64,000 nucleotides of DNA from Octopus sinensis (GCF_006345805.1 NC_043001.1:25668001-25732000); one strand, 5' to 3'. Shown: positions 9,901 through 64,000, counted from the first letter of the stretch. The notes: generated by a model from the letters alone, not told the origin. Made by a program: numbers and translations.

Positions 9901-12900
9901 ACCACCCTCCCTGTACATAACTTCCTGTCCCCCTACATGGCCTTGCTCTTTGTATGACCACCCTCCCTGTACATAACTTCCTGCCCCCCTACATGGCCTT
10001 GCTTTTGCTTTTTGAGCCAATAAAAATTGAATTGAACAAATCCAAATTACGAAAAAATATCTAAATGTGTGGGAAATTCAATTAGCAGGTATGACTATAT
10101 TATCAAGCGATTCAATTTTCACTTGCTTAGCTTCATCTCACTGTGAGTCACTTAAGTGTCATCTACCGTAGTCTTGGGTAGAGAGAAGCTGTATTAGAGA
10201 AACTGGACAAACTGAAACTTGTGTGACCTGGTTTAACACCAGCAGAATTCACTCTACTAGAAGCAATTGGGATAACTTTTCTTGACCAGCCCCTGAAGCA
10301 CTAAAAAAAAAGCCACGTAGACTGTTCTTGGAAAATAAATACAAATAAATAACACAATATCTTTCAGTAACTGTTTCCTATCCTACTTAAATGTTTTATA
10401 TCAGTCTGAAACTCTAATGGTGCATGAGAAAATGTTTGTCATTAAGCCAGGACATATTGCAAAATTATGAATGAGTGATTGAAATACAAATATCTTAACC
10501 TTTTCATTACCAACCTGCCTGAAACAGCCTCCGGCTCTGTAGTACAAATGTATTGTTTTCGTAAGTTTTGAATTAAAATCTTCCACCGAACCTTTAACAC
10601 TAGCTTAATGATAACTAAGTTATTTTACTAAATTCTTTGTTATATTTAACCCTTTCGTTACCAACCCAGCCAAAACCGGCTCTGGCTCTGTAGTACAAAT
10701 GTCTTGTTTTCATAAGTTTTGAATTAAAATCTTCCACCAAACCTTTAACACTAGCTTAATGATAACTAAGTTATTTTACTAAATTCTTTGTTATATTTAA
10801 CCCTTTCGTTACCAACCCGGCCAAAACTGGCTCTGTAGTACAAATGTCTTGTTTTCATAAGTTTTGCATCAAAATATACCACCAAACCTTAGTCGCAATT
10901 TATATTCCTAACACTAGCTTAATGATAACTAGGTTATTTTACTAAATTCTTTGTTATATTTTAAATAATTGAAAGAAACACAGAGCATCTTAAAATAAAT
11001 ACAATAACAAAAGGGTTAAAGTAATTGAAAGAAACACAGAGCATCTCAACAGAAATATGGTAACAAAAGTGTTAACCAAATCTTACCAGGTGAATCGTTA
11101 TTTTGTTTTACCACATTAGCATTTGTAGCTTCTGCAACTTCCTAAAAAAAAAGAAAGAAATCAAAAAAATTATATATAAAACAATAAAAATTCATATAAA
11201 GAAATCATTTTTTAAAAATCAACAGAAACATCTGGCACAATGAGTCTGTCGACAGGTTGCAAGCAATTGCACCAACTTTTGTAGAAAATTAACATCAAGC
11301 CACTCATACTCTTCCTGCTAGGTTAAAAAATTTAGAGCTACTACATCATCATCATCATCGTTTAACGTCCGCTTTCCATGCTAGCATGGGTTGGACGGTT
11401 CAACAGGGGTCTGGCAAGCCCAAAGGCTGTACCAGGCCAGTCAGATCTGGCAGTGTTTCTACAGCTGGATGCCCTTCCTAACACCAACCACTCCGAGAGT
11501 ATAGTGGGTGATTTTATGTGCCACCGACACAGGTGCCAGACGAGGCTGGCAGACGGCCACGCTCGGATGGTGTTTTTTTATGTGCCATCGACACAGGTGC
11601 CAGACGAGGCTGGCGAACGGCCATGATCGGATGGTGTTTGTTACGTGCCCACAGCACGGAGGCCAGTCGACGCGGTACTGGCTACGGCCACGTTCGGATT
11701 GTTATCTTATGTGCCACCGGCACTGGTACCACAAGGATACAAATTCCATTGATGTTCATCTATTTTGATTTGGTTTGATTTAATAGTTAAATCTAGAGAG
11801 AGTATAGAGATGCTAAAGTGTTGTAAATATGATCTAAGAAGGAATGGGGTCTCAGCCTGCTTCCTTAGAAGCAAGGAACACAGGTACAAATTCCCCTGGG
11901 TTAGTAGCAGCAATGATGTGGGTGGAAAAGGCATGTTGTTGGCAGAGAAATGTATTGATAAAATAACTGAGCCACAGAATATGTAATAGAATAATTAAGT
12001 TAAGTTTTGTCTTGGACAATATGAGAGACAGTTATCTCTGTATATACCCTACAATCAGTTAATAGATGAACAAAATGGCCGGTTCTGAGACTCTCTTATA
12101 GAATACCTCAATAGTGAATGACTAACCAGCTTATAAAAGCTGGTGATGTTAATGAATATGTTGGCTAATACATGTCTTTTGTGGCTATGGTTATTGTTGA
12201 AGTAATAAGAAAGAATCAAGGCCTTGGAATTCTGTGACACTGATGACCTAACAATTTGCTAACACCAACATCATGAAGAGGACCAATCAGGTGAATACAT
12301 AAACTAAATTGATTTCATGCCTCCCTGGAAGTGGGACAGGTTGTTGTGAAAAATGTAATACCTAACATAGACAAGTACTCGGAGTAAGAGCTAGGAAAAC
12401 TCATAGCATAAGCCAACTTGAAGATGTAGACACTTAAAGAGCCAATGACCAGTCATAGGTTCAGAGAAGTGCTGGACACCTACCTACAATAGGGGATAAT
12501 AGAGTACCTATGACACAAAATGCTGAGGGATACAAACTAGATCTGTGGCTGGTGTAAGCTTATAGCTAGATAGGTGATATACTGGTGGAATATGGAATAC
12601 TGTAGATACTTGAAACTAAGAAACAGATCTGGAAAAATTGCAGGAAAGAGACAACAAAGAGCAATACCAAGCAACCGGAAGAGAAGCTAAACATCAGATA
12701 TTCAGAGCTGAAATAAAGAGGTTTACAGAGGTTCGGGAATGTGAAGTCTTTCAGATTAGAAGGTAGTATATGAGAGAAAATCAAGATGTCATTGAGAAAC
12801 GTATACAAAATGATAATGGTACACTTACTCTAAATGAAATGGAAAGAGGCAAAAAAGTACAATTGTAAGAGACTGTTTAATGCAGAGAATGTACAGGAAA

Positions 12901-15900
12901 GAGAGGGTGTATTCCATGTAAACCCTGCAAAGTTGACAGCATTATATACAGTTGCGGCCAAAATGTTCAGAACGGCATTGTTTTTGTCAGAAAAGTAGGT
13001 ATAAGTTTTTATCAAAGTTGTTTTATATTCTATAATTTTCACAGACAATAAATACGATATTAATTATTATTGTCTGAGATTTTGGTGTAATTTGAGAGGA
13101 TAATACAAAAGTTATGGATGATTTAGTGATTTACTGCAAAACCCATGGCAGCCAAAATGATCAGAATGGTTGAAAAAATAATAAAATAATCAAAAATGAC
13201 AGAGAATACTGGAATTATTTAATATTTAGTGTGAAGCCCTTTAGCTTCAATCACACTTTGACAACTTCGACTGCATGAGGAAATTAAATTTTCAATTTCT
13301 TGCTGGGTGATCTTATTCCATTCTTCCCGAAGGGCATTCCATAATTGCTCGGTTGTTTTAGGATTTCTGGCTTTCGAATGTTCTCCTAGAATATTCCACA
13401 CATTTTCAATAGGATTGAGATCTGGGCTTTGAGCAGGCCAATCCATAACAATAATCTTTTCAGCCTTGAGAAAGTTCATGACCACCTTAGCCTTGTGACA
13501 TGGGGCATTGCCCTGCATGAATATGGGTGGTTGCTTAGTTGAATTTCTCAGCACAGGCAAGACATGATCTTTTACAAGTTGTTTATAAACTCCTGCATTT
13601 ACCTTTCCATGTAATCACACCAAAGGGCCCACACCATCTCCAGATATCATCCCCCAAACCATGACACTTCCTCCACTGAATTAAACCCTAGTCTTAAGGC
13701 ATTTAGGCGACAATTTTTCACCTACTTTTCGACGAACATAGTTTTTCCCCATCTGAGCCAAATAACAAACTTAGATTCATCACTGAAATGCACCGTTTGC
13801 CATTTTTCTTGAGACCACAACACACGTTCGGTTGCAAGGGTAAGACGACACTTTTTATTCTTGGAGCTGATCAGTGGCTTCACTGCAGGTGCTCTTGCTT
13901 GTAGGTCATGTTCAACTAAACGACGAGACACAGTTTTTCGAAATAAAGTTTTCTTCAGTACAATGCTCATTTCCCGAGAAACAGCAGCAGCAGTTTTAAA
14001 TCTGTCCTTTTTAACCAACTTTACCATAGCACGATCTTCTCTCTTGGTCGTTTTTCTTGGCCTGCCTGTAGACTTTCTTGCTTCACACGAACCACAATCA
14101 TCATAGACCTTAAGAATACCGTGAACAACACTTTTTGACTTGTTAACAACCTTTGTAATAGACCCAATACTTAAATTATCCTTCTTTCGAAGCTTAATAA
14201 TCTGCTGATAACAAAGTACACTGCAGATATTCTTACTAATGTTTAGTAAACGAACTGTCAGGTAAACAAATTCAAAACATTGGAGTTCACCAGTTAAAAC
14301 ACGGAGTAAAAGCAACCGTTCTGATCATTTTGGCCGCCATGGGTTTTGCAGTAAATCACTAAATCATCCATAACTTTTGTATTATCCTCTCAAATTACAC
14401 CAAAATCTCAGACAATGACAATATCGTATTTATTGTATGTGAAAATTATAGAAACTAAAACAACTTTGATAAAAACTTATACCTACTTTTCTGATAAAAA
14501 CAATGCCGTTCTGAACATTTTGTAGTTGTAAGTGAAATTAAGGATATAAAGGCAGATCATGGAAATTGCAGAATGAATTAATTAGAAAGAAAATTAACCT
14601 AGATGAGATGCATTCAATTTTGTGCTACAATTTGTACCATCTCTCTAGTGAAATAACTGTAAAAGAACTTAGATAGGAGTGAACCCTTTTGCTTGGCATT
14701 TGGCAACCTGGAGAAAGCTTCTGACAAGGTTCTAAGTTCTGTGATCTGGTGGTCAATAAGAGAAAGACAAATGGTTTGTAAGGGCCATACAATCCATATA
14801 CAAAGGCATCTATTATAGTCTTCCAGGTTGTAAACAGAGGACTTTAAAACTGGCTGTCTTTGAGACATACTACTGTATATTGATGATCTACTTCTTATAT
14901 TTGAATCTATAGAAGAAATTTCAGACCTGGAAACAAAATCTAGAATTGAGATTTCTCAAAATAAACATGGTAAAGACTAAAACTTTATTACGTAGGAATT
15001 CCATTCAGTATACCTGATGTAAACATGAGGTGCTGTAAGACCATAGACAGACTGATAGAGAAGGTAGCCTTCATTTGTAGCAGATGTGTAAGGTTAGTTA
15101 GTAATAATACCCATGAAATACATATTTTTCAAATGCTGAGAAGTCTCAAAGATGTAGTTGAGGTGGTGTATTGAAAGCATAAGTGACTAGAGTAAGAAGG
15201 GAAGTATAGAAAGTTCAGGAAGTTATTATTGCAAAACAAAGAGCAGAATGTATGGTGATTGTGTAGTGAAACACAGACCTTAAATGCAGAGCATCTATGG
15301 TATCTGGAAAGAAATCAAACGAACCTGCTTTATTAGATAAGTGTGCAAGAAAGAAGATTGTACTGGTGTGGGTATGTAATGTATACGAAAAAGGTCAGAC
15401 TTAGTGATGAAGTGGTGAAGACTGACCTCAAGAAGTTAAACTTAAAGAAGAAGATGACAAAGAACAGTGATAGATGGGAACACATAGTGCTCAGAAGACC
15501 TGGCCACTATGCAGGCATGGCAAAATAGTTAAAATAATGGTGATGGTAATAGTGGCTGGAATATATATCATTGGATCTTTTGCCTATTATATTCCTACCA
15601 AACCTCCATTTGCTACCATATTCATTAGCCTCTCATCTATCCTATTCACTTCACTATGCTGCCTATATAACCAGAGATGTTATCTGATTTGTTTGCATTC
15701 AATCCACTCACCACCATACAGCTACCACGCCACTTCTCTTCCATCATGATGCTTGTGTTAACATGCATGGAATCTTCACCCTCAACTATTAACCACCATT
15801 CTCCACACATGTAACTCTTCATTAACTTTTACCAATCTCACCCTCATCCATCTCTAATGTTGCCCCTTAGTCACTCTCTCTTACCCAGTTTTATTACTTA

Positions 15901-18900
15901 TCCATAACACTAATCATGCTGTTCTCTATTCAATCTCTTTATCAATAACAACAAATAGTCATCAATGTCTCTCTTCCATCACTCCTTCCCCAACCATTCT
16001 ATCACTGTTTCACTCCATCACAATCATACTATCTTTCTCTCCTCTTTCACCCTCTTGACGAACGCTTCTAATCACACTCTTGGTTATGTCTGTCTTGAAA
16101 GAACAGAGACTACATAGACAGAACTCTTTAGTTTTGCAAGGGATAAGGCAACTTTTCTAATGGTGGTACTACAATAAAATGCACTTTATAAACACTATAA
16201 AGTGATCGAATAACAAAGACAACACAGAGTAGAGAGGATTTTAGTCGTACCACTTTGATGCTGGTCCCATGATAAAATGCACCCAGTACACTTAAAATAG
16301 TTGGTGTTGGGTAAGGCACCCTGCCAGAGAAACCATGCAAAAAAAAAAAAAAAATGAAATGTACAAGCAAGATAATATCTTGCAACCCGTTTAGGAATGT
16401 AGTGATTCCGAGACAATGATGATATGTCCAAACCATGACAGCATGGAAAGGGCGGCATAAAATAAATTATGATAAGCATATTAATATTTATTAACTTTGA
16501 AATAAGAAAATAAAAATAGAATATATGAACTTACAGCATCCATTTCTTCTGGTTCTGAAAAAGACTCTTCATTAGATTCTTCAGCTTCAGCTGACTTTTT
16601 TGGATTCTATTTCAAATTATAAAATTCAGTAATTGAAACAAATATTCAAACTCAAGTACATCATCGGGAAAATATAAGCAAACAAAATAAGTATATTTTG
16701 TATAAAATTATTGTACCCCAACTGAATGCTTCACAAAAGCCTGTGATACTTCTGAACTGCAGTAGCCGTCTAAACCTATTTCGCATCCCAGCATTACTTT
16801 ATCCAGCGATTCTATGTTTTCTTTTATACTAGATCTGAATTCATTACCGCCAAGAGGTTCTGGTCTCACTATTAGAGAACTCGTGTTTAAGGGACCGATT
16901 AGTATTGAATTTATTTATCAAATACTCTCTAGTGTTGGTCGATTTTCTACCACGAAAGCATTTAACACGTTCTGCTCTTGAATCTTGCTTCCAAATGATT
17001 GGCGAAGAACGTCATAAAATCATGTTTTCCATGGCAATACTTCTTTTAAAAACATATTTAATGAAAGTTCATTTCTTAACAGACTACGCTGGAAGCATTT
17101 CAATCTTATGTTCACCGCCCTTCCTCCACATATCTCCCCAAAATATAAAAAAATGCAGAAAAATTATTTTAATAAAACATCACTAATACTACTATCTACA
17201 CACTGATCAAGATCGGTTGGACCTTATGATAGTCATGAAACTCATCCGCATTAGAAAATAAAATTCACTAAATACGAAGTGACCATAGGCAATATCAAAT
17301 AAAAAAAACAAAAAAAACATTTCTTTGTCGTTAATTATGAATTATTAATGAACGAGACAGATATAATAGTTCATAAGCAGAGAATAACTGCTTAAAAATT
17401 CAGTTAGATGCCTGAATTTCGTGAACTATTTTAAGGATCAACCAAACATTTTACAATGACAAACGATATATTTATTTATTTTAACACAATGGTTAACAGA
17501 TTCTTTGTGCTAGAAATGATATCACAGTTCGAGAAAAGGGTTTATGAAAAGAAAATATGCAACATTGATTGCTCAAAATTTTCAGTTAACTTCACGTTTT
17601 GAAAATCTTATCTTCGTTACGTTTCTTGTTATTTTAATTGCAAATGTCATGGTTGATAGACATCGTATTCCGATTCCTTGCTCACTTATCTGAAGTGGTT
17701 CGAGACAAGAAAACCAGAAGTAAACACAACTCATAAGCTACCCAAACAGACGTATCTTCGTATTTGGGGCCCGCATTTTAATATTACATCAAAAGTTAAC
17801 AAATAGAAATAAATAGATAAAAATTGATATATAAACAGGCTATTCTACAAGATGTATAACACAATTGCGTAAACTTTTTGATACAATGGTGTGTTGTACA
17901 ATAAATAGTTTGTGCCGACAGAACGAACTCTCGTGAGAATAATTCTGACCATGACAAGAAATCATTTCTCATTCATGACAAAGCAATTAAGATAACCGAG
18001 CAACGTGCAATGACAGACAACATAGAATTTAACAGTATATAACTGAAAAAGTGCATCATGTTTACCTCATACCCCTTTTCATGGCGCAGCTTAGCCTTCA
18101 CCGTAGACTCACAATACCGGTTAGTGGGTGTTGTTGTAAGACCAGGTTGACACCAGCTTGCACACAAACCAGGAAATCCATTGCAGCATCCAGAATCATG
18201 TGATAGTCGATAACCACTTGATGTTTGCACAGTAACCATTTACCGAAACACGGCCAAATCAAAACGATATCGCAGCCAATGGCTTATTTTCAGTAGCTCT
18301 CGAGCCAATGGCATTACTGACCGACACACGAGGAACCACGACAGGCAAATTCACCGCATGGGTGAAAAGACGCACGTACCAAAGCGACACCATAATTGCG
18401 AAAATTTACCGAATCGAGATCTTGTTTGTTTAATCAGTAAAATGTAATGATTTAATCATTATTACAAATTAGATCCTCTAAATTCCGAACAGGACCTAAA
18501 TAATGATATAATAAAAGTCTTCCGCAAATCGCAACGATAAAAGGTTTTTAAATGTTATTGTTTCTAAAAGGTAACTAGAGAAAATAAAATATCAGAATTT
18601 CACAACCATATGTACTCAGGAATGCATTTTATGTAGTAATATAATAAATACACAAAGAAGTCCTAACTTCTTAAATCTATCGCCGTATTACGTTCTGCTA
18701 ATTTCAGTTGACCTATATTAAGAATGTGTATGTAGTCGTCTTTGTCAGTTCAAACTCGTGGATCAAGTGCCACCGTTTATTTTTCACAGCTTCTACAAAC
18801 AATGGCCTCTTTTATTTACAAACTAAACCAAGTTGTTTAAAATTAAGGTTGCATATGTATATAATAATATACATAAAAATGATATAGACAAATGCATATA

Positions 18901-19297
18901 TCTTGCTTTTTCCCCATTTCTAGGAAATAAGCAATCAGATGAAGATGGGAGAAAAATTTAGGTTAAAACAAGTACTTGATATTTTCCATTTTAAGCAAAA
19001 TCCGTGTATTTTGTCCTAAGATGCATATATATAAATACATATAAATATTTATCTATATATATATTTATATATATTGCTAATTTCCTAAATAATGTAGTTA
19101 TACGAGATCTTAATAGTTATTTGTAATTCGGGGAGATTTGTGGGAGATTTAGAAATATTTTACACTCCCATTTCCTTCAAGATTAATGTTGTAAATATAA
19201 ACCCGTTTACAAATAAATTTTATGTAATTCAAAATATTTTAGCCTCTAAATAAAACAGGAAACTATCGTAACATACCTTATTCTTTCTAGCAGCCAT
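985..19297 (-). CDS. NCL: Nucleolin-like protein, copy A (14 exons, about 550 aa: acidic domain, 3 RRMs, YGG-rich tail)
   Basis: Exons read by hand, all GT-AG and phase-compatible: 19277-19297, 16535-16606, 11087-11141, 9057-9257, 8895-8939, 8554-8595, 4696-4813, 4447-4592, 3576-3708, 3213-3352, 2957-3092, 2687-2823, 1169-1534, 985-1025 (1653 nt). Starts MAARKNK; RNP1 motifs RGFAYVEF and KGIAFVEF; RNP2 LFVKNL and LLVRNL; ends GKKRTYSDSDR-stop. The domain order acidic/NLS/RRMs/Gly-rich/basic tail is that of nucleolin. Confidence 0.9.
1819..1891. repeat. 30-bp imperfect inverted repeat with 13-nt loop in copy A intron 12
   Basis: GTGTTACTGGTGATTCCCACAGTACAGAAT (1819-1848) pairs with 1862-1891, with three non-Watson-Crick positions. 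Confidence 0.85.
2009..2229. repeat. Palindromic element with about 92-bp arms; probable Penelope-like terminal relic
   Basis: 2009-2100 is nearly the exact reverse complement of about 2138-2229. The centre has a hammerhead-like topology (see findings). The family assignment is inference. Confidence 0.7.
2403..2631. mobile_element. piggyBac-type MITE (TTAA TSD, CCCTTTAG...CTAAAGGG ends)
   Basis: TTAA at 2403-2406 and 2628-2631. Related copies at about 31470-31677, 33097-33322, 34280-34494, 38690-38912 and 49929-50154. Confidence 0.75.
5010..7620 (+). mobile_element. Degenerate RTE-clade LINE (RT, Cys/His finger, 3' tail) in copy A intron 6
   Basis: Frameshifted ORF pieces IPKDWCSRIIANCYKNKGDA, FVDIEKAFNR, GVHQGLVLSTLLF, ADDLVLIADS, WAKFRKLLLLL, RLCWYGHV, ending in the (ATG)n tail. 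Confidence 0.85.
8032..8235 (-). mobile_element. RTE-type 3' tail fragment
   Basis: Contains TTTTCCATGCTGGCATGGGTTGGA, the reverse complement of the RTE tail. Confidence 0.7.
9420..10035 (+). mobile_element. 5'-truncated CR1-clade LINE
   Basis: ORF 9455-9739 (RPILEYG...HHLERVQKLATRMV...YEERLK...YSLEKRRRCGDLILAHNII) is a typical CR1 ORF2 C-terminus. The 3' UTR has a ~56-bp tandem duplication and an AATAAAAATTGAATTGAA end. Confidence 0.85.
10495..11075. repeat. Tandemly triplicated TTAA-CCCTT MITE end (second MITE family)
   Basis: A ~140-bp unit starting TAACCCTTTCGTTACCAACC recurs at about 10496, 10648 and 10798; only the last reaches AAAGGGTTAA at about 11011-11020. Related copy at about 42684-42898. 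Confidence 0.75.
11344..11770 (-). mobile_element. RTE-type 3' tail with repeated stem-loop units
   Basis: (CAT)n, then CGTTTAACGTCCGCTTTCCATGCTAGCATGGG, then repeated GTGCCACCG units. Confidence 0.8.
12949..14522 (-). mobile_element. Tc1-family DNA transposon with long IR/DR-type TIRs (about 220 bp)
   Basis: Left end TA|CAGTTGCGGCCAAAATGTTCAGAACGG. 12949-13172 is the inverted match of 14313-14522. Inner direct repeat CCAAAATGATCAGAA at about 13152. The outermost ~10 bp of the right TIR are missing. Confidence 0.9.
13219..14315 (-). pseudogene. Tc1 DD34E transposase pseudogene
   Basis: Motifs RKSTGRPRKTT, VHFSDESKF, GSVMVWG, QGNAPCH (second catalytic D replaced by G), WPAQSPDLNPIENVW and AKGLHTKY-stop. 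A frameshift and two in-frame stops lie between 13560 and 13722. Confidence 0.9.
17935..18470 (-). other. Highly conserved non-coding block, copy A intron 1
   Basis: The reverse complement aligns to 24920-25425 with about 21 substitutions over about 500 nt plus a few indels. Function unknown. Confidence 0.9.
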
Positions 19298-19480
19298 TTC
19301 ACTTTGTTTTCTGGGATAATATACCGAATAAAAAGTTCAGCTGCTATGAATGTTCTCTGTAACTGTAGCTCGAAGCTGTACGTACACTTTTCTTAGCAGT
19401 GGCAAGGTATAGCCACCACCATGTAGTTTCGTATCTATTGAATAAATGTCTCCAGCATTTGATTCTATAATTAATTTTAA
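19298..19480 (-). promoter_or_regulatory. 5' UTR / proximal promoter of copy A
   Basis: Alignable with 24040-24207: both share CCAGAAAACAAAGTGAAATG and ATACGAAACTA...GTGGCTA. The TSS cannot be determined from sequence. Confidence 0.5.
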
Positions 19481-20004
19481 TTTTATTACCATTTATTGCT
19501 GGATAATAAAAGCTGAGGTTATTTCATTGAACCCTTTACTCAGTGTAAATATATTTATTGAAAATCTACTGGAGTGATATCAAATTACGAGAGGTAAAAT
19601 GGGCGCTAACTGGGTAAAATGTCGTAAATCAAGAAATAGTAATTAAATAAGTAAAATTATTTTCTTCATTGTCCTTAGCGACGAGTAAAGAAAATAATTA
19701 CAATAAAACAAATGACTAATGAAAATAAAAGGACCGGGAGACAACCCTGGAAATTTGATAAATTAAAATTAATTGAATATTGAATGCAATGAAGAGTGAG
19801 CTAGTACTATGACAACTCTGAACATGTTTTAATATTATTAGACCTCATCAGTGAAGCAGGAATTAACCATAACATCATCTTACAAAGACTGGGGAGAGTA
19901 TAGGATTTCAAAGAATTAACACTAAGGGATTGAGATAATTTGAAACAATGACTTGAAAAATACATAAATACACTTGCTACAGTAAAAGACAGGGGACGGA
20001 GGCA

Positions 20005-20210
20005 GATAATAGCTTGGCAGAAACGTTAGCATGCTTAGCGGTATTTTGTCTGTCTTTACGTTCTGAGTTCAAATTCCGTCGAGGTCGACTTTGCCTTTCA
20101 TTCTTCAGGGGTCAATAAATTTAGCAGCTGTTGCCTACTGGAGTCGATCTAATCAACTGCCCCCCTTCCCCAACATTTCAGGCCTTGTGCCTAGAGTAGA
20201 CAAGATTATT
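20005..20210 (+). mobile_element. tRNA-derived SINE (GGCAGAAACGTTAGC family)
   Basis: GAGTTCAAATTCC B-box-like motif followed by GAGGTCGACTTTGCCTTTCATC. Further copies at about 25455-25860, 29800-29990, 47770-47935 (-), 57490-57690 (-) and 59860-60110 (-). Confidence 0.75.
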
Positions 20211-21134
20211 TTTACTGAATTTCTGTAGAATAAAGTGAGTGACATAGTTGAGTAGATCACCAGTAGATCTAACTCTAAGAGGCTGTACAAGTGATAATTG
20301 ATGAGGGAGAAAGACTCAAAGTATTAAATTAAAGAATTGTTAATAACTATGTTTATAACTATAGTGATGTTGTTTTTTTAGCCTTAGGTATATCCTGGAC
20401 CAGGACACCTGTTACCAAATGCAATCCAGCTGTTACCTTTCTGCTTTTATAGTAATTAGGACTATGGTCTCCATTATGTTTCCTTTTAAAGACAATGGGG
20501 ACTTACTTGAAAAAGATTCAGCTGTTATGTCTAGCAGATGAAGCAATCACATAAAGGCTCCTTTGTTATGTCCTCTTTTAAGGTGTTGGAGGCAAGAGCA
20601 ATAGACCAGAAAGGTTAACCTCTTCTTAGCCCACACACTCCTCTTGTACCAAAATTATTATCACAAAAGCTGAACCCAAATTCTGAATGTTGCAACAATA
20701 AGCATCACCACTCATTCATATTCCTAACACTTAGTTTTATGTGTGACCTATTTGCTCTAACTACAAATAACTCTCATTCTTCTCTTGACCTTCAGTACAG
20801 ACATCATCAACATGCAAGCATGGTATCTCACCACAAACCACCATTGCCTCCATGAAAAGAGACCTCAAAAATATTTTCCAAAAGGGAGATATTAATCTTG
20901 TTTCATTCAACTGCATAAAGGAAGAATCACTGCTTATAGAAAGGAAACTGTACTGTACCTCTGATTTTCTAGTCTTGGACAATATGCAATTGAAACCAAC
21001 CCTCAAAGTTTTTACAAATATGAGATATCACTATCTCTGATGATTTTCTTGGCAATGCTACACACATATCATGACTGAAGCCTCATCACAAAGACCAGCC
21101 TTCCTCTTTAATACTAGAAAATACTTCAGATCTC

Positions 21135-21540
21135 ATCATCATTAAACGTCCGCTTTCCATGCTAGCATGGGTTGGACGAATGACTGAGGGCTGGTGAACC
21201 AGATGGCTGCACCAGGCTTCAATCTTGATCTGGCAGAGTTTCTACAGCTGGATGCCCTTCCTAACGCCAACCACTCCAAGAGTGTAGTGGGTGCTTTTTA
21301 TGTGCCACCGGCACGGGAGCCAATCAGGCAGAACTGGCATCAACCATGTTCAGATGGTGCTTTTTACAGGCCACCGGTATGGGGAGCCAGTCAGGCGGAA
21401 CTATGGGGCCAGTCAGGCAGTACTGGCAACGACCTCACTTGAATCTTTTACACATGTCACCGGCACAGGTGCCAGTAAGGTGATGCTGGTAACGATAATG
21501 CTTGATTAGTGTCTTTTACGTGCCACCGGCACGGAGGCCG
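21135..21540 (-). mobile_element. RTE-type 3' tail
   Basis: Same tail motif and stem-loop units; another copy at about 22190-22510. Confidence 0.75.
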
Positions 21541-24039
21541 TTAATGGTTTCTTATAAGTCTCAAATAAGACCCATAGTGTAGTACTGCCCCTATATCTAG
21601 GACAGTACTGGTACCAATTGTAACCTTCAAACAATCTTCACCATAGACTTAATGCAAAATTAGAAAAGTTTTTTGTAAAAGTAATTTCACATAAATATCT
21701 TACCCTTCTAAAAATTCATTATTTAACTTGCAACATATTGTTTATGCACTAAGCATACATTTACTCTAATACATGTAAGTCAACAGCTGACATCGTATAA
21801 TGTAGTTATTATTAGATCACTCATAAGCTGCACTGCAGTCACAAACATGTTACACTGTTGACTCTAGAGTTTTAAAAGTGTAGTTTTTTTTGGAGAGAGA
21901 GACCTCTCTCTCTCTTTCACACACACACACACACACACACATAATATGTATGTAATTAATAAGAAGTTTGGGTAAGGCTGTGAGTAGCAGTTATAGATGC
22001 ACTAAAATGAACTGACACAAAATGATTTAGTTTATTTTTATAGATTTTATTCAACCAATACAGTTTTCCACATCTACAATGTATTGTAAGTAAATATGAA
22101 TGTTAGTCAGTTGCAATAGAATATCCCAAAGCTTGTAGCAGTGGGCTACTTTTGTGTGGAAGGAAGAAAGTAAATAAGGCAAGACTCATCGTTTATCTTT
22201 TAACGCCTGTTTTCCATGTTAGCATGGGTTGGACGGTTCAACTGGGATCTGGGAAGCCAGGAGGCTGCACCAGGCTCTAGTCTGTTCTGGCAGTGTTTCT
22301 ACTGCTGGATGCCCTCCCTAACGCCAACCACTCCGTGAGTGTAGTGGGTGCTATTTATGTGCCACCGGCAGAGGTGCCAAGGGAGGCTGGCAATGGCCAT
22401 CATCGGTTGGTGGTTCTTACATGCCACCGACACGGAAGTCAGTCAAGGTGGCGCTGGCATCGGCCATGTACGGATGGTGCTTTTTACGTGCCTGTGGTGG
22501 CTGGCAATGGCCATGTACAAGAAAACTTAATGTGAATCTGAAATCTAGATCTTGGAGAAGATTGCTAAGTAACTAAAGCAGACTGTCTGAAAATGAAGTA
22601 ACTCAAGTTTGTAGCTAACCTAAGATTGCACAATGGATTGGGTTGAGCTATGTGAATTGGACTCAGTTTCACCTGAAATCATTGCAAATTTGAGAGGTGA
22701 CACAAATAAATTCTGAGTGTAGATTCTGATAAATAATAGAAGCACAAAGATGGTGTGTGTGTGTGTGGGGGGGGGGGGTCCAATTCCCTGTTATGAATTA
22801 CATACATATATTTGTGTGTACATACATATATATATGTAGGCACATACATATGTACACACACACATATCCTTCTAATAATGAGTCAGAAAAGTTTCCAGAA
22901 GGAGGTTTTTTTGGTAAGTATATAATAGAATTAATGTCTTAGGGGAACCACAAACTAACTAAAGAACTTAATGCTGTGAATGCATGGTATCAAATATTTA
23001 TTTCAAGAATTCTGAAGAATTGCAATTTTGTTTTGTTCTTGGCCTAGTAATTGTTAATGCATTTGAGAAACAATATGAAATTTGCTACATATATCATAAT
23101 TGGCAATATTGAAAAAAAAAAAAGGAATATAAGAAGAGAAATGAAAGGAAAGAAGTCGGGATGATATAGGTGAAGGTGAAATGGGTGGAATAAGGTGCCC
23201 AAGTAAAACTGCTAAATTCTAGTTTAGAGTACAAACATGTAGACAAGATACTAGTTCTAATTTGTGGGGAATATAAACAAGTGCATCTAATTGATTAGTA
23301 GTAGAGAAGTAGTAGAAATTTATTAAAAAGTGTCTCTGATTTGATGGTTTGGTTTGAAAAACATAAAGCCAAGAATGAACCTAATTGTATGACTGAGTAA
23401 AAAGTTTTGGGTTTTGGGGACAGATTATGATAATTGGCTGCTGTTGTTAAATAGTCTGATTTTACATTTATCTGAAGTAAAAGAAAAATTAATGATAGAA
23501 CATTATATATAAATCAATCTAACTTAGATTGAAGGAGAAAAGAAATTAAATCAAAATGAATGTCTGTAGAACAGTAAATTCATGAGAAAGAATATGAGGC
23601 CTGATAAGACCGAAAAATTACTGTTGCTTTCTCTAGTTGCTTTAAAGAGCAGCTCAATTCTAATCTATTCTGGATCCATTCTAATCTACGCAGTCTATCT
23701 TATCCAAAAATTTCGATCAACTGATCTTACTGGAGTTATTTCCCTTGTTACACCAGCATGCAGAATACGCTCCGAGATATTTTCCCATCAGCCATTTTAT
23801 CTATATTACGTTTTTCTTGAGTTTAAGGTTCCTTTCTCTGTTGTGTATAGACGTTCGAGATTTCATACGCATTATTAGTGTTGACTTTTATTTGCTCTTC
23901 CTCCAACTTTTGAAATCTCAAATACAGTGCTTCATTGTTTTAAAAAAAAAAATCTTAATGTAATATTTTGGAATCGTATTAGGTGAAATTTGAATTAATA
24001 ATTGTTTCGTTACTAACAATCATTATCTCTATAATAAAA

Positions 24040-24207
24040 ACAAAATCAAATTCTGGAGATATTTAATCAGTAAATACGAAACTATATCGTAGTGGCTACG
24101 CCATAAAGTGAATTAGACTGTGCGCACGTATTCATTCTTCTTTTACAGAGAAAATTCAGAGCAAGTGAAAATTTTGTTCGATATAATATTCCAGAAAACA
24201 AAGTGAA
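24040..24207 (+). promoter_or_regulatory. 5' UTR / proximal promoter of copy B
   Basis: Homologous to the copy A upstream region. The pyrimidine run TTCATTCTTCTTTTACAG (24131-24148) could be a TCT/TOP-like start or a splice acceptor. Confidence 0.5.
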
Positions 24208-27200
24208 ATGGCTGCTAAAAAGAATAAGGTATGTTGTTATGTTGGTTTCCTCTTTTATTTAGAGACGAGATATTTTGAATATATCAATTTATTTATAAGC
24301 AGGTTAGAATTGCAATATAAAACCTGAAATCCAAGCAAATGGGGACGGAATCCACATTTTTTAAGAGTATTTATAGATGGGAGTGCATCTCCAAAGAAAT
24401 CACAGCAAAAATAACGATCGGTTAAAGCTTGTATTATGATGGCTTTGAGAAAATTCAATATCTATATATATATTTACCTAATGGCAAATAAATAACTTAA
24501 AATTTAAAATATCGGGTATTTTTTTTTAAACCTTAATAGCTTTCACTGCTTGATCTGATTGCTGGTTCATTGAAATAGAAAAAGCATATCCCTAATTTTA
24601 AACATTCAGTTTATAACTAGGCCATTCATTGTTGAAGAAATGTCTGGTGGTACTTGATGCAGGAGTTTGAATTGACAAAGATGACATATAAATATATATG
24701 ATCAAAGGAAATTAAACACATAATGCTGCAGAGATTTAAGAAGTTAAATCTACTTCTACTTTATTATATATTAGTACCTTAGTTCTAAAGTATAATAACT
24801 TTTTTAAAAAATGAGATACTTTTATTGTCCATCTATAAATATTAATTAAAAATCAATTAGGTTAAGAGTTTTGTTTTTTTTAATAGATCAAGCATTTTAG
24901 ACTTAGAATTTACAAATATAATTTGTAATAATGATTAAATCATTACATTATACTGATTAAACAAACAAGATCTCGATTCGGTAAATTTTCGCAATTATGG
25001 TGTCGCTTTGGTACGTGCGTCTTTTCACCCATGCGGTGAATTTGGCTGTCGTGGTTCCTCGTGTGTCGGTCGGTAATGCCATTTGGCTCGAGGGGTACCG
25101 AAATATAAGCCATTGGCTGCGATATCGTTTTGATTTGGCCGTGTTTCGATAAATGGTTACCGTGCAAATGATTCTGAATGCTGCAATGGATTTCCTGGTT
25201 TGTGTGCAAGCTGGTGTCAACCTGCAACAACACCCACTAACCGGTATTGTGAGTCTACGGTGGAGGCTAAGCTGCGCCATGAAAAGGGGTATGAGGTAAT
25301 CATTATGCACTTTTCAGTCATATACTGTTTAAATTCCATGTTGTCTGTTATTGTACGTTGTTCGGTTATCTTAATTGCTTTGTCATGAATGAGAAATTAT
25401 TTCTTATTATGGTCGGATTATTCTTAACCCATTTTGTTCTGTAAGCAGAAACATTGTATAGGAAGGCGGCGAGTTGGCAGAAACGTTAGCACGCCGGGCG
25501 AAATGCGTAGCCGTATTTCGTCTGCCGTGACGTTCCGAGTTCAAATTCCCGCGAGGTCGACTTTGCCTTTCATCCTTTCGGGGTCGATAAATTAAGTACC
25601 AGTTACGCACTGGGGTCGATTTAATCGACTTAATCCCTTTGTCCTTGTTTAGCCCCTTGTGGGTAATAAAGAAATAGGTATTTCGTCTGCAATTACGTTC
25701 TGAGTTCAAATTCCGCCGAGGTCGACTTTGCCTTTCATCCTTTCGGGGTCGATAAATTAAGTAACAGTTACGCACTGGGGTCGATGTAATCGACTTAACC
25801 CCTTTGTCCTTGTTTGCCCCTTCTATGTTTAGCCCCTTGTGGGCAATAAAGAAATAATAAACCTTGTATAGAAAGGGTTAAAAATGTATGAATGTAGACA
25901 AGATTGTATTTTGTGTACACAGTGTTTATGTCAATTTGGTAATTTTTAACGTAACCTTAAAATCCAATGCTTTTTGCAAAAGAAACAGATTTGTTTGCAA
26001 ACTTTTGATTAGTTTCTGGAGGTATTTGTCGTGACTGAACCTAAACTAATCGTCTTGTTTTATACTATCTTAGAATTTATTTATATGTGAGCAATGAAGT
26101 GAAATACGATGTCAATCGGCCATGACATTGCAATTAAAATAACAAAAAACGTAAAGGAGATTAAAATTTCAAAATATGTCTAAGTTAGTTTGAAGAATTT
26201 TTTCCCCAACTCCCATTTTCTCACACTATGTAATCCTTTCCAGTACAACCATTTATCAAAATCGTATATCATTTGTTGCTGTGGCATAACTACATATGTG
26301 TACCCCGACCCACCACGACATTGCATCCTCATAACTTCCAGGAAAATGGATACTTTTTATCGAAATTTTCAACAAATAGCGCTGGATTTAAAATATATAG
26401 GGATTTATGGGAAAGAGTTCTGGGGGTGGGGGTCAGAAAACTTACACGATAATAAACCAGCCTGCTGGGTATTAACAAGTATGTAGAAAATGAATATGAA
26501 AAAAATTGCGCTAACGACCCGTGCAGGGTGAGGAGGGCTTTCAGAAAATCCACAAGATCCGATTTTCCGTCATAACTTTCGCTTTTTTTTTTTTTTTCAT
26601 ATAGAATCCCACGTTTTTGGTTATAGAGGATTCGATTCTGAAAAAAGAAATTTCAGAAATCGCATTTTCAAAATTTTAATCCCCCCGCCTCATTTTCCAC
26701 TTTTTCCGGGAAATAGGTAGAAAAATAGGAAATTTCCGGAAAAAGTGAGAACTGAAGGGGTGGGGAACGGTTGAAATTTTTTAAATGCGATTTTTAAAAT
26801 CTTTTTTTTCAGAATCGGATCATCCATAACCAAAAACATGGGTTTCTGTTAAAAAAAAAAAAATTTATATATATATATATCCATTTTACCGAAAGTTATG
26901 ACGGAAAAATCGGATTTTGTGAATTTTCTGACCCCTCCCCCCGGGTCTTGGCGCAATTTTTTTTTTTCATATTCGTTTTCTACATTCTTGTTAACACCCA
27001 GCAGGCTGGGTGGGGGGTTATGCTCGGGTGAAGATCTGTATTTTGAGCCTTTTTTTCTCTCATAATTTTTAAGAAAATGAAAATTTTTTAATGAAATTTT
27101 ATACAAATACCTTTGAAGCGGCATAGATTATGATTATAAAGAAATTTGTGGGGAAATTTTCCCGAGGGAGTGGGGAGAGGAATTTCGGATCAGGAAGACC

Positions 27201-29996
27201 AAAGAAGTTGTAACTACTCCGTTTTGTCGGGGATTCCCCCCATCCCCTTTTTTTTATTACACCACAGCCTTTGAAATGAGTGGGAGGGGGCATCTTTTTG
27301 TGAAAAAACTTTTAAACCCCCCACCACATTCCTCACCATCCCACTCCGGACCAATTTTTTTAACTTAAAAACTATGGGAGGAGCCTTTTTGATAAAAAAA
27401 ATAAAATAGAATAAAATGTAAGTATTTTCAGTGGAAAAAGGTGTACGATTCAAGGGAGATTTGGCTGTTGTTTCTAGCACATCCCACTCTCACATGTATT
27501 GATGTTTTTTCAATATTTTTCTCCCATTAAGCATATTTTATGGAATGGTGATACTGAAGTAACACGTGCGCGGTCCATTGGTTGAATATACCCCACCTCA
27601 ATCAAGCGAAACCGTGTGTGTGTATAAGAAAAAACATTTTTTTAACAGTAAAGTATGCTATTAAAATGAATTGTCTTTTACATAGCTCTTTTTTTTTTAA
27701 ATCACTGGATAAATGCCAGTAATGATCTTCTCAGGCTCTAACAAACAATCGGGGGCAGGGTGTGAGGTTGCAAAAAAAAAAATCATAATTTTTCAATTTT
27801 TTTTATAGCATATAAATGTATTTATTGGGGAGCAAAATATTGAAAAATATCAATACATTCGAGAGTGAGAAAGAAATGAGGAGGGTTGTCTTGGGATGTG
27901 CTAGAAACACCTGCCAAATCTCCCTTAAATCACTCACTTTTTCCTCAGAAAATATTAATTTTTGAAATTTTTTTTTTACTGAAAAGGCTCTTCCCATGGT
28001 TTTGAAGTGCAAAAAAAAATTGACCAAAATTGGTCTGGAGTGGGATCGAATGGGGGTGTACAAAAAATTTTCAAAACTTTTTTCACAAGAAGATGCCCCC
28101 ACCCCATCATTTCAAAGGCTGTGGTTAAAAAATGGGGAAAATCTCCGTCAAAATGAAGTAGGGTACTTTTTGGTTATCTCACCCTCATTAAAAAATTGGG
28201 CCATCCCCCCCCCGTTTTACAAAAAAATATCTATTTTTGGTTATCTCCTTCAAATAAAATGTTTAGCCCTCAATAAAAAAAAATAATAAACATAAAAAAT
28301 GGAAAGATGAAACATCATTTTCAATCTGATAATATTTTTTATAACAAATCATACAAAACTGAAAAAAATTAATAAACATGAAAATGGTAAAAAATTAAAC
28401 ATCTTGCTGAATCTGATATTTTTATAATAAATCATACTATGCCTATTAGAGGAGGCCAAACGTCAGCAATGTGTTGAAGTATTGAATCAAATGGATCTCT
28501 TTTAATCCAATCTCTTGTTGCCATATTAACTCAATTTTTTGGCGGGAAGATAGCCCAATTTTTTTTAATGGGGCTGGGTGAGATAACCAAAAATTACCCA
28601 AAGTAGTTCCAACTTATTTAGTCTTCCTGATCTGAAATTCCTCCCCCTCCTCCCAGAAAAAATTTTCCCCGCAAATTTCTTAATAATTTTAATCTATGTC
28701 ATTTCAAAAGTATTTGTATAAAATTTTACTAAAACATATCCGTTTTCCTGAAAGTCGCGAAGGGAAAAAAGTCAGATTGTGTGAATCCACTCCACTCAAA
28801 AAATTCTTTCCCATAAATCTTTATATACTCTGAATCCACAGCATCTAAGTGGTATTTGTTGAAAATTTCATTAAAAAGTATCTATTTTCCTGGAAGTTAT
28901 GAGGACACAAAGTCAGAGGGGTACACATCTGTAGTTATGCCATTGCTATAAAATGTTTGTTTCGTTTTCAAAATAGTTCACAAAATTCAAGCATCTAACA
29001 GAATTTTGATGCAACTGTTTTCAAATTGTGAACCATTGTTTGCCCTGTCAATAATTTGTAATTTATGATTTGAATGTATTTATTTTTGCATATGTTTCTT
29101 ATAATTCAACTGTGTCAATGATCATTTATTCTTGTATACTGAGAATTTTTGTTTCCAATGCTGATGAATTTCATATCTACAGTAAGGTCCTCCCAGTCTG
29201 AGCTTCGTGCAGATTATGATGTCATTTATGTTAATATTATTATGGAAGATACATTTCTTTGCATTCTTTGAAAGTAATAAATCATACAAAAAAAAAGACC
29301 CCTGATTTTATGGCCATAAGAAATCAAACATCACTAACTTTGAAGACATTTCTTTTTAGTAAAAAGTTTGAAAAAGTTTAATAATAATAAAAAACTTAGA
29401 CAACTTCTCTGAAAGTGGAACCAAAGAGTCTTGATGTGTTAATATAAAATTAAGATCCAGCAGAAAAGATGAAATTTTGTACAGAAAAATACCTGTTTGT
29501 GTTGATAGTGGTTTCAATTAGTATTTTTATTATTTGCGCTAGACTCCAAAAAAGTTTGTAAAACCTGTAGAACCTGAAGAATCTTCAGAGGATTCCTCTT
29601 CAGAATCAGAAGAAATGGAAGTTGTAAGTTATTTTATTATTCTTTTCATTTTGCTTTATTTGTATCAAAAGTCTAGTAGACCTCAATTATGAATAAAGTA
29701 GTATAGTACCTGTAAAATTGATGGTCGTTGAGTGTTTGGAATATGTAAGAAAATTTTTTGGATAGTGTGTATATATAGTAGAAAAAATTATTATGGTGGT
29801 GAGGTAGCAGAATCGTTAGTGCTCCAGGCAAAATGTTTAGCAGTATTTCATCTGTCTTTACATTCTGAGTTCAAATTCTTTTGAGATTGACTTTACCTTT
29901 CATCCTTTCAGGGTTGATAAAATAATTTGATGTAATTGATTTAACTCCTCCTCTGAAATTGCTATCTTTGTGCCAAAATTTTAAACCATTATTATG

Positions 29997-54329: not shown

Positions 54330-54785
54330 TGACTGGCATCCATGCTAGCGAAGTGTTTAGAGCACCATCCGAATGTGATCGTTGCCAGAGCAACAAACTG
54401 GCTTCCATGCCGGGGCACGCAAAAAGCACCATTCAAGCGTGATCGTTACCGGTGTTGCCTTACTGGCACTTGTGCTGGTGACATGTGAAAAAACATTCGA
54501 GCGAGGTCGTTGCCAGTGCTGCTGGACTGGATCCTGTGCAGGTGGCACATAAAAAGCACCATTTGAGCATGGCTGTTGCCAGTACCGCCTGACTGGCCCT
54601 TGTGCCGGTGGCACGTAAAAGCACCCACTACACTCTCGGAGTGGTTGGCATTAGGAAGTGCATCCAGCTGTAGAAACTCTGCCAGATCAAGATTGGAACC
54701 TGGTGCAACCATCTGGTTTGCCAGTCCTCAGTCAAATCATCTAACCCATGCTAGCATGGAAAGCAGACGTTAAACGATGATGATG
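54330..54785 (+). mobile_element. RTE-type 3' tail with expanded stem-loop units
   Basis: Tail motif and (ATG)n end. A second copy lies at about 55170-55648 (+) and another at about 61080-61265 (-). Confidence 0.8.
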
Positions 54786-62511: not shown

Positions 62512-62687
62512 AAATAATAAATATTAGGGAATAATCCAAATTTACAGGGAAAAAATCAGATTTAGGATTAAATCGATTTTATAGTAAAAATTATAAAATA
62601 TTATTCGAGACCAAACACACTATTTTGCAAAACAAAAAGGAAAGACTTAATTAATACATAAAATTTTAATAAATAGTCAAAAAAACG

Positions 62688-62730
62688 CCACTACAATCGT
62701 TTCTTGTCTTGATCGACAATCTTCAGGTGG
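62688..62730 (-). ncRNA. Minimal type I hammerhead ribozyme core
   Basis: The minus strand reads CCAC-CTGAAGA-TTGTC-GATCAA-GACAA-GAAAC-GATT-GTA-GTGG. Confidence 0.7.
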
Positions 62731-63981: not shown

Positions 63982-64000
63982 CGGTTTTTTTTGACTATTT

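Follow-up and report, generated by a model that had tools for sequence, protein, structure and literature searches.

A conserved non-coding block in intron 1 of octopod nucleolin paralogs, shaped by selection and gene conversion and possibly serving as an alternative promoter

INTRODUCTION

Regulatory elements are common in first introns, and mammalian nucleolin reportedly has a Myc E-box region in its own. The introns of vertebrate nucleolin also host small RNAs, the snoRNAs U20, U23 and U82. In MDM2, the P2 promoter is an alternative promoter within intron 1, whose untranslated first exon is spliced to the common exon 2. Poison cassette exons with conserved flanks are frequent in RNA-binding-protein genes, and those of SR and hnRNP genes are said to be ultraconserved. 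Concerted evolution by gene conversion is known from the globin and primate class I ADH clusters (PMC3409193).

Here we describe a block in the first intron of octopod nucleolin genes that resembles each of these systems in part. The window (64,000 nt of Octopus sinensis, from CM016863.1) holds two nucleolin paralogs head-to-head, A on the minus strand and B on the plus strand. As with MDM2 P2, the block lies in intron 1, has candidate promoter-type boxes, undepleted CpG and a donor at its 3′ end, and would produce a leader with many upstream AUGs and a protein begun at a downstream Met; unlike MDM2 P2, it is present and homogenised in three paralogs, conservation of its putative leader exceeds that of the coding exons, and initiation is putative. 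Like the poison exons of SR and hnRNP genes, it is non-coding, contains stops, is more conserved than coding sequence, spills into the intron and belongs to an RNA-binding-protein gene; it differs in having no convincing acceptor, in its extra CpG-rich promoter-like half and in a conservation demonstrated in octopods only. The globin and ADH clusters share with it paralogs that are closer within species, short sharp-edged tracts and a conflict between segment and gene trees, whereas the octopod homogenised segment is 300-500 bp of non-coding intron in genes whose proteins have diverged to 58-70% identity. As in mammalian nucleolin, the regulatory region would sit in a first intron after a very short coding exon 1, but the octopod block has no CACGTG, its non-canonical sites are unconserved and it has no sequence relationship to the mammalian region. 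With U20, U23 and U82 it shares conservation within a nucleolin intron in sense orientation, yet it is several times snoRNA length and has no Rfam match, conserved box motifs or structure signal.

RESULTS

Extent and distribution of the block

The gene landmarks and the conserved segments are as follows.

24208-24228, plus strand: exon 1 of paralog B, encoding MAAKKNK
24916-25425, plus strand: block copy in intron 1 of nucleolin B, the full span of high A/B identity
24916-25083, plus strand: first 168 nt of the block in B, matching A 18307-18474 at 98%
25036-25320, plus strand: universal core in B, found in every paralog (A, B, C) of both genera, Octopus and Argonauta
29543, plus strand: start of exon 2 of paralog B
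19297-19277, minus strand: exon 1 coding sequence of paralog A
17935-18474, minus strand: block copy in intron 1 of nucleolin A, 95.3% identical to the B copy
18040-18354, minus strand: universal core in A, 92.4% identical to the Argonauta A core

A preliminary description of the window, made from the sequence alone, had reported an inverted repeat of about 500 bp in the two first introns. The repeat is present, and the exon 1 and exon 2 coordinates bear out the intron-1 position of both copies, that of B lying 688 nt downstream of the exon-1 donor. Over B 24916-25425 the copies differ at 24 of 507 aligned pairs (95.3% identity), so the high identity stands, with a count slightly above the earlier estimate of about 21; two mismatches fall in the first 110 nt, where one had been claimed, and four in the first 170. 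Gap runs are 1, 1, 25, 6, 1, 1 and 1 nt long, which includes the 25- and 6-nt indels described before and five single-nucleotide runs in place of one. The remaining paralogous A/B segments, coding exons among them, are 68-87% identical, so the block is indeed more conserved than the exons. Its edges are sharp, identity dropping from ~95% to roughly 60% at both; the flanks had been called barely alignable, and a weak alignment persists upstream. The block was also rightly called CpG-rich: the observed/expected ratio is 1.0-1.2 in the blocks, against 0.43 over the window as a whole and 0.37 for the intron next to them.

A third nucleolin paralog, C, carries the block too, and Argonauta hians likewise has A, B and C. 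An nhmmer profile search of ~234 kb of sequence from four species (matching 24968-25367 in B) returned exactly ten copies, all in intron 1 of nucleolin paralogs and in sense orientation, at sites orthologous across the four species, O. sinensis, O. vulgaris, O. bimaculoides and A. hians included. A high-copy young repeat inserted twice, which the preliminary description had named as the finding that would undo its reading, is accordingly rejected for the ~234 kb sampled.

Selection on the core

The universal core is ~300 nt long; across six paralog/genus representatives, 50-80% of its columns are invariant when taken in 20-nt bins. Octopus and Argonauta orthologs are 92.4% (A), 84.2% (B) and 81.8% (C) identical over it, with flanking intron that is unalignable between the genera. 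Between O. sinensis and O. bimaculoides the A core has 2 mismatches in 429 nt (0.5%) and the B core a mismatch rate of 2.5%, compared with 3.4-6.5% for flanking intron and intergenic DNA, so that the core changes 2-10 times more slowly than flanking intron. No conserved reading frame was found in the block. Conservation between genera and in all three paralogs, the check proposed beforehand for selection, thus indicates that selection acts.

The 25- and 6-nt stretches by which A exceeds B are found in Argonauta A, B and C and in Octopus C, save for 3 nt missing from the B and C copies, and their deletion is common to the B genes of O. sinensis, O. vulgaris and O. bimaculoides. On this comparison the longer form in A is the ancestral state and B is the deleted one, which corrects their reading as insertions in A.

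Gene conversion between paralogs

Argonauta B and C cores are 98.7% identical while their proteins are 60.6% identical; in Octopus the A-B and B-C core pairs reach 95.5% and 94.4%, compared with 82-92% for orthologs. The protein tree groups by paralog (A with A, 100/99; B with B, 88/87), whereas the block tree groups by species (Argonauta B+C, 100/100; Octopus B+C, 98.8/95). Seven columns of the core, made up of five substitutions and a 2-column indel, are genus-diagnostic: the three Octopus paralogs agree on one state and the three Argonauta paralogs on a different one. Six columns (three substitutions plus an indel of 3 columns) are specific to A, and none to B or to C; because Octopus A and Argonauta A have these A-specific states in common, the element has been retained from a time before the two genera separated. 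In alignment columns 146-223, A and B are 100% identical and Octopus A and Argonauta A only 82%. The most recent-looking candidate conversion tract, judged from the alignment, is B 24916-25083 with A 18307-18474.

Paralogs that are closer within a genome than to their orthologs indicate conversion, and the within- versus between-species comparison suggested at the outset comes out this way, with a block tree that disagrees with the protein tree. The earlier alternative of a recent gene-conversion tract is therefore right in that conversion acts and incomplete in that selection does too. Read from these alignments, the block is held near constant by purifying selection together with gene conversion between paralogs.

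Motifs, putative leader and splice sites

The features within the block are listed here, with a slash for the exon-intron junction.

18275-18312, minus strand: pair of inverted CCAAT-type boxes of paralog A, which read GCCAATGGC on the plus strand, at 18275 and 18304
25078-25117, plus strand: inverted CCAAT-type boxes in B, GCCATTTGGC at 25078-25087 (extra T) and GCCATTGGC at 25109-25117
25147-25166, plus strand: near-invariant, A/T-rich CGATAAATGGTTACCGTGCA with a TATA-like ATAAAT, 0.8 of columns invariant
25168-25295, plus strand: putative non-coding leader exon 1b of B, its 3′ end at the invariant donor, its 5′ end tentative
25249-25254, plus strand: second invariant donor-like site, ATT/GTGAGT, 47 nt upstream of the first
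25296-25301, plus strand: invariant 5′ splice-site-like GAG/GTAATC in B
18066-18225, minus strand: putative leader exon 1b of A, keeping the ancestral 25- and 6-nt stretches, its 5′ end tentative
18065, minus strand: start of the intron at GAG/GTAAAC, the A equivalent of the B donor

The twin boxes of the preliminary description are present in A, with the extra T in B, at 18275 and 18304, one base off the 18276 and 18305 given there. B has a third CCAAT-type box, ATTTGG, ~20 nt downstream of the second. Both boxes are kept in all Octopus copies; in Argonauta, box 2 is CCACTGG in its copies, while box 1 is ATTGG in the A copy, TTTGG in the C copy and TATGG in the B copy, so the CCAAT pentamer is not strictly conserved. 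Directly upstream of the putative leader, CGATAAATGGTTACCGTGCA (A equivalent 18245-18226) may be a core-promoter element; no clear TATA or Inr at a fixed distance was seen in the block copies. A palindrome at 24929-24945 and a TTCACC-CATGC-GGTGAA hairpin at 25024-25040, both noted earlier, were confirmed; both are outside the universal core, and the palindrome, terminal to the block, is not conserved. The Myc-type sites proposed before fared worse. CACGTG is absent from both window blocks, and CATGCG and CACGAG/CTCGTG vary among paralog/genus copies, their positions being either on the edge of the universal core or beyond it.

The most invariant stretch of the core is the putative leader and not the box region, a greater invariance that a plain promoter model leaves unexplained. 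GGGTATGAGGTAA is identical in all ten block copies, and the donor at the 3′ end of the putative exon, GGGTATGAG/GTAA, is invariant in 10/10. The putative B leader has upstream ATGs at 25168, 25178, 25186, 25279 and 25291; if splicing in B took place at the ATT/GTGAGT donor, the ATGs of the leader would share the reading frame of exon 2, a frame not kept in C or in Argonauta B and C. The 25 nt that B has lost are exactly at the place where a start would be expected under a promoter reading.

In RefSeq, isoforms X3/X4 of the O. sinensis B gene and X3 of its O. bimaculoides counterpart start at MEV, with the Met that ends exon 2, so their mRNAs lack the exon-1 ATG. When exon 1b of B was spliced to exon 2 in silico, the longest ATG-initiated ORF started at MEV as in X3/X4. 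An upstream exon that skips exon 1 would also give such isoforms.

A cuttlefish RNA-seq contig, L006, has exon 2 joined to a leader that is not exon 1, with ATTGG boxes ~180-225 nt upstream of the junction and an ORF from the equivalent Met. The contig extends 838 nt upstream of the junction, well beyond where transcription beginning near the boxes would reach, and some of its sequence must therefore be pre-mRNA or a long leader. Local alignment of the octopod box region to the cuttlefish region scored 30-37 for four of six copies against 22 +/- 2.5 for shuffled sequence, with 0-4 of 200 shuffles matching the score, a borderline result. This box stretch is the only part of the block with even such similarity to the cuttlefish leader region; a profile search of the octopod block against the cuttlefish leader gave no significant similarity, and a protein-based search of RNA-seq contigs for an octopus transcript gave nothing usable.

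DISCUSSION

We read the block as a cis-regulatory module under selection and conversion, and its most likely nature, at about even confidence, is an intron-1 alternative promoter with an exon 1b. The preliminary description had offered an enhancer or an alternative promoter, and the latter fits best among the functional readings, given the boxes, CpG, donor and MEV isoforms. Paralogs C, A and B would have inherited the block from before the Octopus/Argonauta split, and their likeness would have been upheld by purifying selection and repeated short conversion events limited to the block. The upstream half of the core (CCAAT-type boxes, ATAAAT element, undepleted CpG) would recruit the transcription machinery, and the downstream ~130-160 nt would be transcribed as far as the donor GAG/GTAAAC and spliced to exon 2. 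The resulting mRNAs would have no exon-1 AUG, several upstream AUGs and a main ORF from the exon-2 Met (MEV...), yielding either a nucleolin shortened at its N-terminus or an mRNA whose translation is damped. Initiation within the block, the place of the start site and use of the donor in Octopus are putative throughout.

A regulated, autoregulatory poison cassette exon with highly conserved flanks is improbable. It would run from ~AAG/CTGGTGTCAACC to GAG/GTAAAC between exons 1 and 2, and its inclusion would bring an in-frame stop and then mRNA decay or downstream initiation, the MEV-start RefSeq predictions being explicable in this way too. Nucleolin is an RRM protein, conservation is strongest over this segment and spills into the flanks, and an invariant AG at alignment column 431, the only one plausibly placed, accompanies the invariant donor. 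In exon-1 phase a TAA comes up 10-12 codons into the segment in A, in B and in the Argonauta B and C copies, but an in-phase stop is expected of any non-coding DNA. The candidate acceptor is weak, with 0.55-0.60 pyrimidines upstream and fewer in Argonauta B and C, and the 200 nt of CpG-rich, box-containing conservation upstream would go unexplained. Upstream of its leader, moreover, the cuttlefish contig is unspliced and genome-like, not exon 1, which is unlike a commonly used acceptor.

It is similarly doubtful that the block is an intronic enhancer or silencer for the canonical upstream promoter, never an exon, with an incidental conserved GT. First introns are a typical location for such elements, mammalian nucleolin with its Myc-related intron 1 being a reported precedent, and CCAAT-type boxes and CpG retention suit any protein-bound DNA element. 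The canonical E-box is absent, however, and the non-canonical sites are not conserved, while the invariance in ten copies of a 13-nt donor-like string and of ~100 nt before it argues for use at the RNA level, to which the MEV isoforms and the cuttlefish leader also point.

The least favoured of the functional readings, a small intron-hosted ncRNA, is very unlikely. It would be snoRNA-like, in keeping with the snoRNAs of vertebrate nucleolin introns, or a Pol III transcript that starts after ATAAAT and ends at the conserved T-run CACTTTTTCAG at the 3′ edge of the universal core; the core does end just past a run of 4-6 T in 10/10 copies, with the A/T-rich element ~190 nt upstream. Rfam covariance models gave no match to the A and B blocks at the gathering score, and the weak matches (E = 0.6-10, chance level) differ between the two. 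Folding energy is no better than that of shuffles (z-scores of +0.45 over 201 nt and -0.97 over 540 nt), and the consensus energy over the core is -43 sense against -38 antisense, a low-power comparison of very similar copies in which both strands fold alike. A conserved box C/D or H/ACA arrangement was not found outside Octopus A and B, box-like strings at the 5′ end being missing in Argonauta and paralog C, and B tolerates a 25-nt deletion within the would-be RNA. The structured, nucleolin-hosted ncRNA suggested beforehand thus gains nothing from these searches.

That the block is a functionless recent conversion tract or a young repeat inserted twice is hardly credible, for although conversion clearly occurs and the edges are sharp, the block keeps its position in six genes from two genera amid unalignable intron, has between Octopus species a rate of change 2-10 times below that of flanking intron, has no further copies in ~234 kb and shows A-specific states in both Octopus A and Argonauta A.

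Whether or not the alternative promoter is the right reading, the locus presents one short non-coding element that selection and conversion together maintain in three tandem paralogs with diverging coding exons. Its kind is already well known (alternative promoter or leader, concerted evolution), and it opens no long-standing question. Because conversion contributes, identity between paralogs taken by itself exaggerates the constraint, and scans for conserved non-coding elements should be read with this in mind. The block marks a specific regulatory site in a ribosome-biogenesis gene family expanded in octopods, and it hints at an alternative mRNA start that alters the nucleolin N-terminus or its translatability. 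More speculatively, and with low confidence, the putatively transcribed part (~100-160 nt up to the donor) may be an RNA-level control element, be it a leader with an autoregulatory role, a poison exon to which nucleolin or a partner binds, or a small RNA of a new kind. If so, invertebrates would have here their counterpart of the ultraconserved elements known from vertebrate RNA-binding-protein genes, under constraint tight enough that conversion keeps three paralogs near-identical in it while their proteins drift to 58-70%.

The intron-1 block of the nucleolin genes

Intron 1 of the octopod nucleolin paralogs contains a conserved segment of 300-500 bp (the block) that is a real, selected and partly homogenised cis-element. 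Two of the three paralogs, A and B, lie head-to-head within the window, each with one block copy in sense to its own gene, ∼690 nt (B) or ∼800 nt (A) past the exon-1 donor.

Nucleolin genes and blocks in the window
24208-24228, plus: gene B, exon 1 (MAAKKNK)
from 29543, plus: gene B, exon 2
end near 40210, plus: gene B, last coding exon
19297-19277, minus: gene A, exon 1 (MAARKNK)
near 991-1059, minus: gene A, last coding exon
24916-25425, plus: block of B
17935-18474, minus: block of A
25036-25320, plus: universal core of the B block, common to all copies
18354-18040, minus: universal core of the A block, common to all copies

Aligned with each other, the two blocks have 24 mismatches among 507 pairs (95.3% identity) and gap runs of 1, 1, 25, 6, 1, 1 and 1 nt, while the remaining paralogous A/B segments, coding exons included, are 68-87% identical. 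The inverted repeat claimed in the preliminary description is therefore real, and its block is indeed more conserved than the coding exons. The motifs listed there are also present, with the CCAAT-type boxes of A (18275-18312) one base off the positions given. One point needs correcting: the 25-nt and 6-nt indels are due to deletions in B rather than insertions in A. Octopus C and each of the three Argonauta copies keep both stretches, bar a 3-nt gap in the B/C copies, and the deletions are common to gene B in three Octopus species.

The observed/expected CpG ratio is 1.0-1.2 in the blocks, 0.37 in the neighbouring intron and 0.43 in the whole window. The CpG peak (25451-25750) falls outside the conserved block and is due to copies of a SINE-like repeat, two of which adjoin the 3′ edge of the B block in tandem.

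Repeats in the window
25450-25860, 20014-20183, 29795-29925, 47723-47886, 57473-57690: CpG-rich interspersed repeat, SINE-like by its look, no tRNA detected
401-683, 11344-11781, 21133-21539, 22195-22513, 30374-30725, 44034-44401, 54505-54797, 55217-55648, 61079-61278: interspersed family of ∼250-400 nt with numerous copies (75-90% identity) on either strand, two of them between A and B
62671-64000: large palindrome of ∼1.3 kb, 92% identical to its own reverse complement, reaching the window end
12959-13172 / 14313-14522: inverted repeat in gene A, 214 nt, 94%, arms ∼1.1 kb apart
35165-35341 / 35343-35520: tandem duplication in an intron of gene B, 178 nt, 97.8%

The gene cluster

Paralog C lies beyond the upstream edge of the window, tail-to-tail with A, and ends ∼7 kb before the window start by coordinate arithmetic on O. 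vulgaris records. The window itself matches chromosome record CM016863.1 of O. sinensis assembly GCA_006345805.1 at 36,006 of 36,006 bases. The arrangement C> <A B> recurs in O. vulgaris, whose locus is 98.9% identical to the window, and in Argonauta hians. A deoxynucleoside-kinase-domain gene flanks the C side of the octopod cluster (loci L001, L003, L004 and L005). Acidic stretches, RRM domains and a Gly/Arg tail are found in the encoded proteins, which their sources name nucleolin.

Upstream of exon 1 only ∼35 nt are conserved between genera, far below the intron-1 block. A pyrimidine run, CATTCTTCTTTTACAG, lies 5′ of the B start codon (24120-24207) and is absent from the A copy (19386-19298); it may mark either a start of TOP type or a 3′ splice site. 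A 580-residue O. bimaculoides model of paralog A (GCA_001194135.2), seemingly antisense through the B block, was judged spurious, an annotation artefact by its look, because it begins in a SINE-like repeat of B intron 1 (L002 12600-12901) and so overlaps gene B.

Conservation of the block

Orthologous loci were reached via annotated proteins in A. hians (L001 and L005), O. bimaculoides (L002) and O. vulgaris (L003 and L004). A profile search of ∼234 kb found exactly ten block copies (A and B of three Octopus species, C of O. vulgaris, and A, B and C of Argonauta), all ten in nucleolin intron 1 and all in sense. Within the ∼234 kb sampled this excludes a dispersed, high-copy young repeat.

Orthologous cores are, ungapped, 92.4% (A), 84.2% (B) and 81.8% (C) identical between genera; intron 1 outside the block is unalignable at that distance and the proteins are just 58-70% identical. 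Among six paralog/genus representatives, 50-80% of core columns are invariant per 20-nt bin. In the comparison of O. sinensis with O. bimaculoides, core mismatches amount to 0.5% for A (2/429, no gaps) and 2.5% for B, against 3.4-6.5%, with many gaps, in flanking intron and intergenic DNA. This slow divergence of the core relative to its flanks is the signature of purifying selection. The nhmmer profile had no significant match in the nucleolin locus of a mussel (Mytilus californianus), and a literature search found no description of the block.

A second, smaller intron-1 element lies ∼650 nt 3′ of the block (26083-26174, plus; 17597-17689, minus). Its A and B copies share 84% identity, and Argonauta A and B have it too (L001 3592-3653 and 11902-11946). 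The core of this element includes ...GCCATGACATTGCAATTAAAATAACAAGAAACG; Rfam gave no match to it, and no fold is supported.

Gene conversion between paralogs

By protein sequence, Octopus A groups with Argonauta A (support 100/99), as does Octopus B with Argonauta B (88/87), so the three paralogs are older than the split of the two genera. In the tree of block cores, the B and C copies of Argonauta fall together instead (100/100), and likewise those of Octopus (98.8/95). Argonauta B and C are 98.7% identical in their cores, with a 291-nt tract at 98.3%, and 60.6% identical as proteins. Seven core columns (five substitutions and one 2-column indel) are genus-diagnostic, separating all Octopus from all Argonauta paralogs. 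Six (three substitutions, one 3-column indel) set A apart in both genera, and none is specific to B or to C; homogenisation is thus only partial in A but thorough in the other two paralogs. The clearest recent tract in O. sinensis is the 5′ 168 nt of the block (98% A/B); over alignment columns 146-223, A is 100% identical to B and 82% to Argonauta A. Judging from these trees and alignments, gene conversion also acts on the block. Cross-species conservation had been proposed as the mark of selection and closer similarity of paralogs within a species as that of conversion; the comparison gave both at once, conservation across genera together with similarity of paralogs within a genome.

Coding, RNA and Myc motifs

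A coding block was rejected: no frame is open across copies, indels in Argonauta B and C shift the frame, and substitutions are mostly non-synonymous whatever the frame. The 37-codon ORF that opens at the ATG at 25186 of B is interrupted by a stop in the A copy. A search of a protein collection with translated block ORFs, aimed at contigs of other cephalopods, gave nine candidates, none of them scored.

Rfam returned nothing credible for the whole window at gathering score or for both blocks at E <= 10, and a tRNA scan of the window found none. No fold signal was seen: single-sequence z-scores (+0.45 and -0.97) were uninformative, as were consensus folds, about as good antisense as sense. The suggestion of an unrecognised structured ncRNA finds no support in either Rfam or folding.

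The canonical E-box is absent from the blocks. The sites CATGCG and CACGAG/CTCGTG, put forward earlier as Myc-type, find no support: both paralog C and Argonauta have them in variable form or not at all, and this is also true of the terminal palindrome and the hairpin. In Octopus C one change to the hairpin (ACC/GGT to ATC/GAT) is compensated, although this hairpin sits at the extreme core edge. A literature search did not confirm the statement that mammalian nucleolin is Myc-regulated through intron 1.

Core architecture and proposed function

The core consists of two halves. The upstream half holds most of the CpGs and has two inverted CCAAT-type boxes ∼30 bp apart (25078-25117 in B), a third degenerate box and then a near-invariant CGATAAATGGTTACCGTGCA. 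The downstream half, of 130-160 nt, is the most invariant part and ends in GGGTATGAG|GTAA, the same in 10/10 copies. Another donor-like site, ATT|GTGAGT, likewise invariant, precedes it by 47 nt. A run of 4-6 T closes the core.

Most likely, the block is an alternative promoter with a leader exon. Beside the observed structure, conservation, concerted evolution and motif content, this reading includes steps that we infer, namely initiation inside the block, the start position and the donor used in Octopus. Three transcript-level hints are compatible with an alternative first exon. In RefSeq, isoforms X3/X4 of O. sinensis B and X3 of O. bimaculoides have the N-terminus MEV, whose Met ends exon 2, which implies that the mRNAs of all these isoforms lack the exon-1 ATG. 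When the putative leader is spliced in silico to exon 2, at 25295|29543, the upstream ORFs are short and the longest ATG-initiated ORF is MEV.... In cuttlefish, RNA-seq contig L006 (SRR21372853) carries a fully spliced nucleolin ORF from the equivalent Met (MQVETT), with exon 2 (VTKKAPKP...) joined not to exon 1 (MSPKSTK) but to a different leader, which has several uATGs and, 180-225 nt before the junction, ATTGG boxes.

The nhmmer profile of the octopod block had no significant match in the cuttlefish transcript. By local alignment to the leader region, 4/6 octopod copies converge on one box region of 70-80 nt; they score 30-37, shuffles score 22 ± 2.5, and 0-4/200 shuffles reach the observed score. 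This weak similarity is a hint, not proof, that the block and the cuttlefish leader region may be homologous. Octopus RNA-seq contigs sought with the B N-terminus returned just one known RefSeq protein.

A poison cassette exon would account both for how very strongly the leader segment is conserved and for the MEV isoforms, but is improbable given its weak acceptor and the cuttlefish contig, in which genome-like sequence, not exon 1, precedes the leader. We also think it unlikely that the block is purely an enhancer and never an exon, which leaves the invariant donor string unexplained. A Pol III-type or intron-processed small RNA, suggested solely by the closing T run and supported by no search or fold, is very unlikely. 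A conversion tract or young repeat devoid of function runs counter to the cross-genus data and can practically be dismissed.

As an alternative promoter, the block would drive transcripts beginning with a non-coding exon 1b, whose mRNA would yield nucleolin without its first 31 residues or, because of upstream AUGs, be poorly translated. It is a new instance of an already known kind. We propose that the conservation of the block provides the homology for recurrent conversion between paralogs, and conversion in turn would hold the block copies co-adapted to the same factors.
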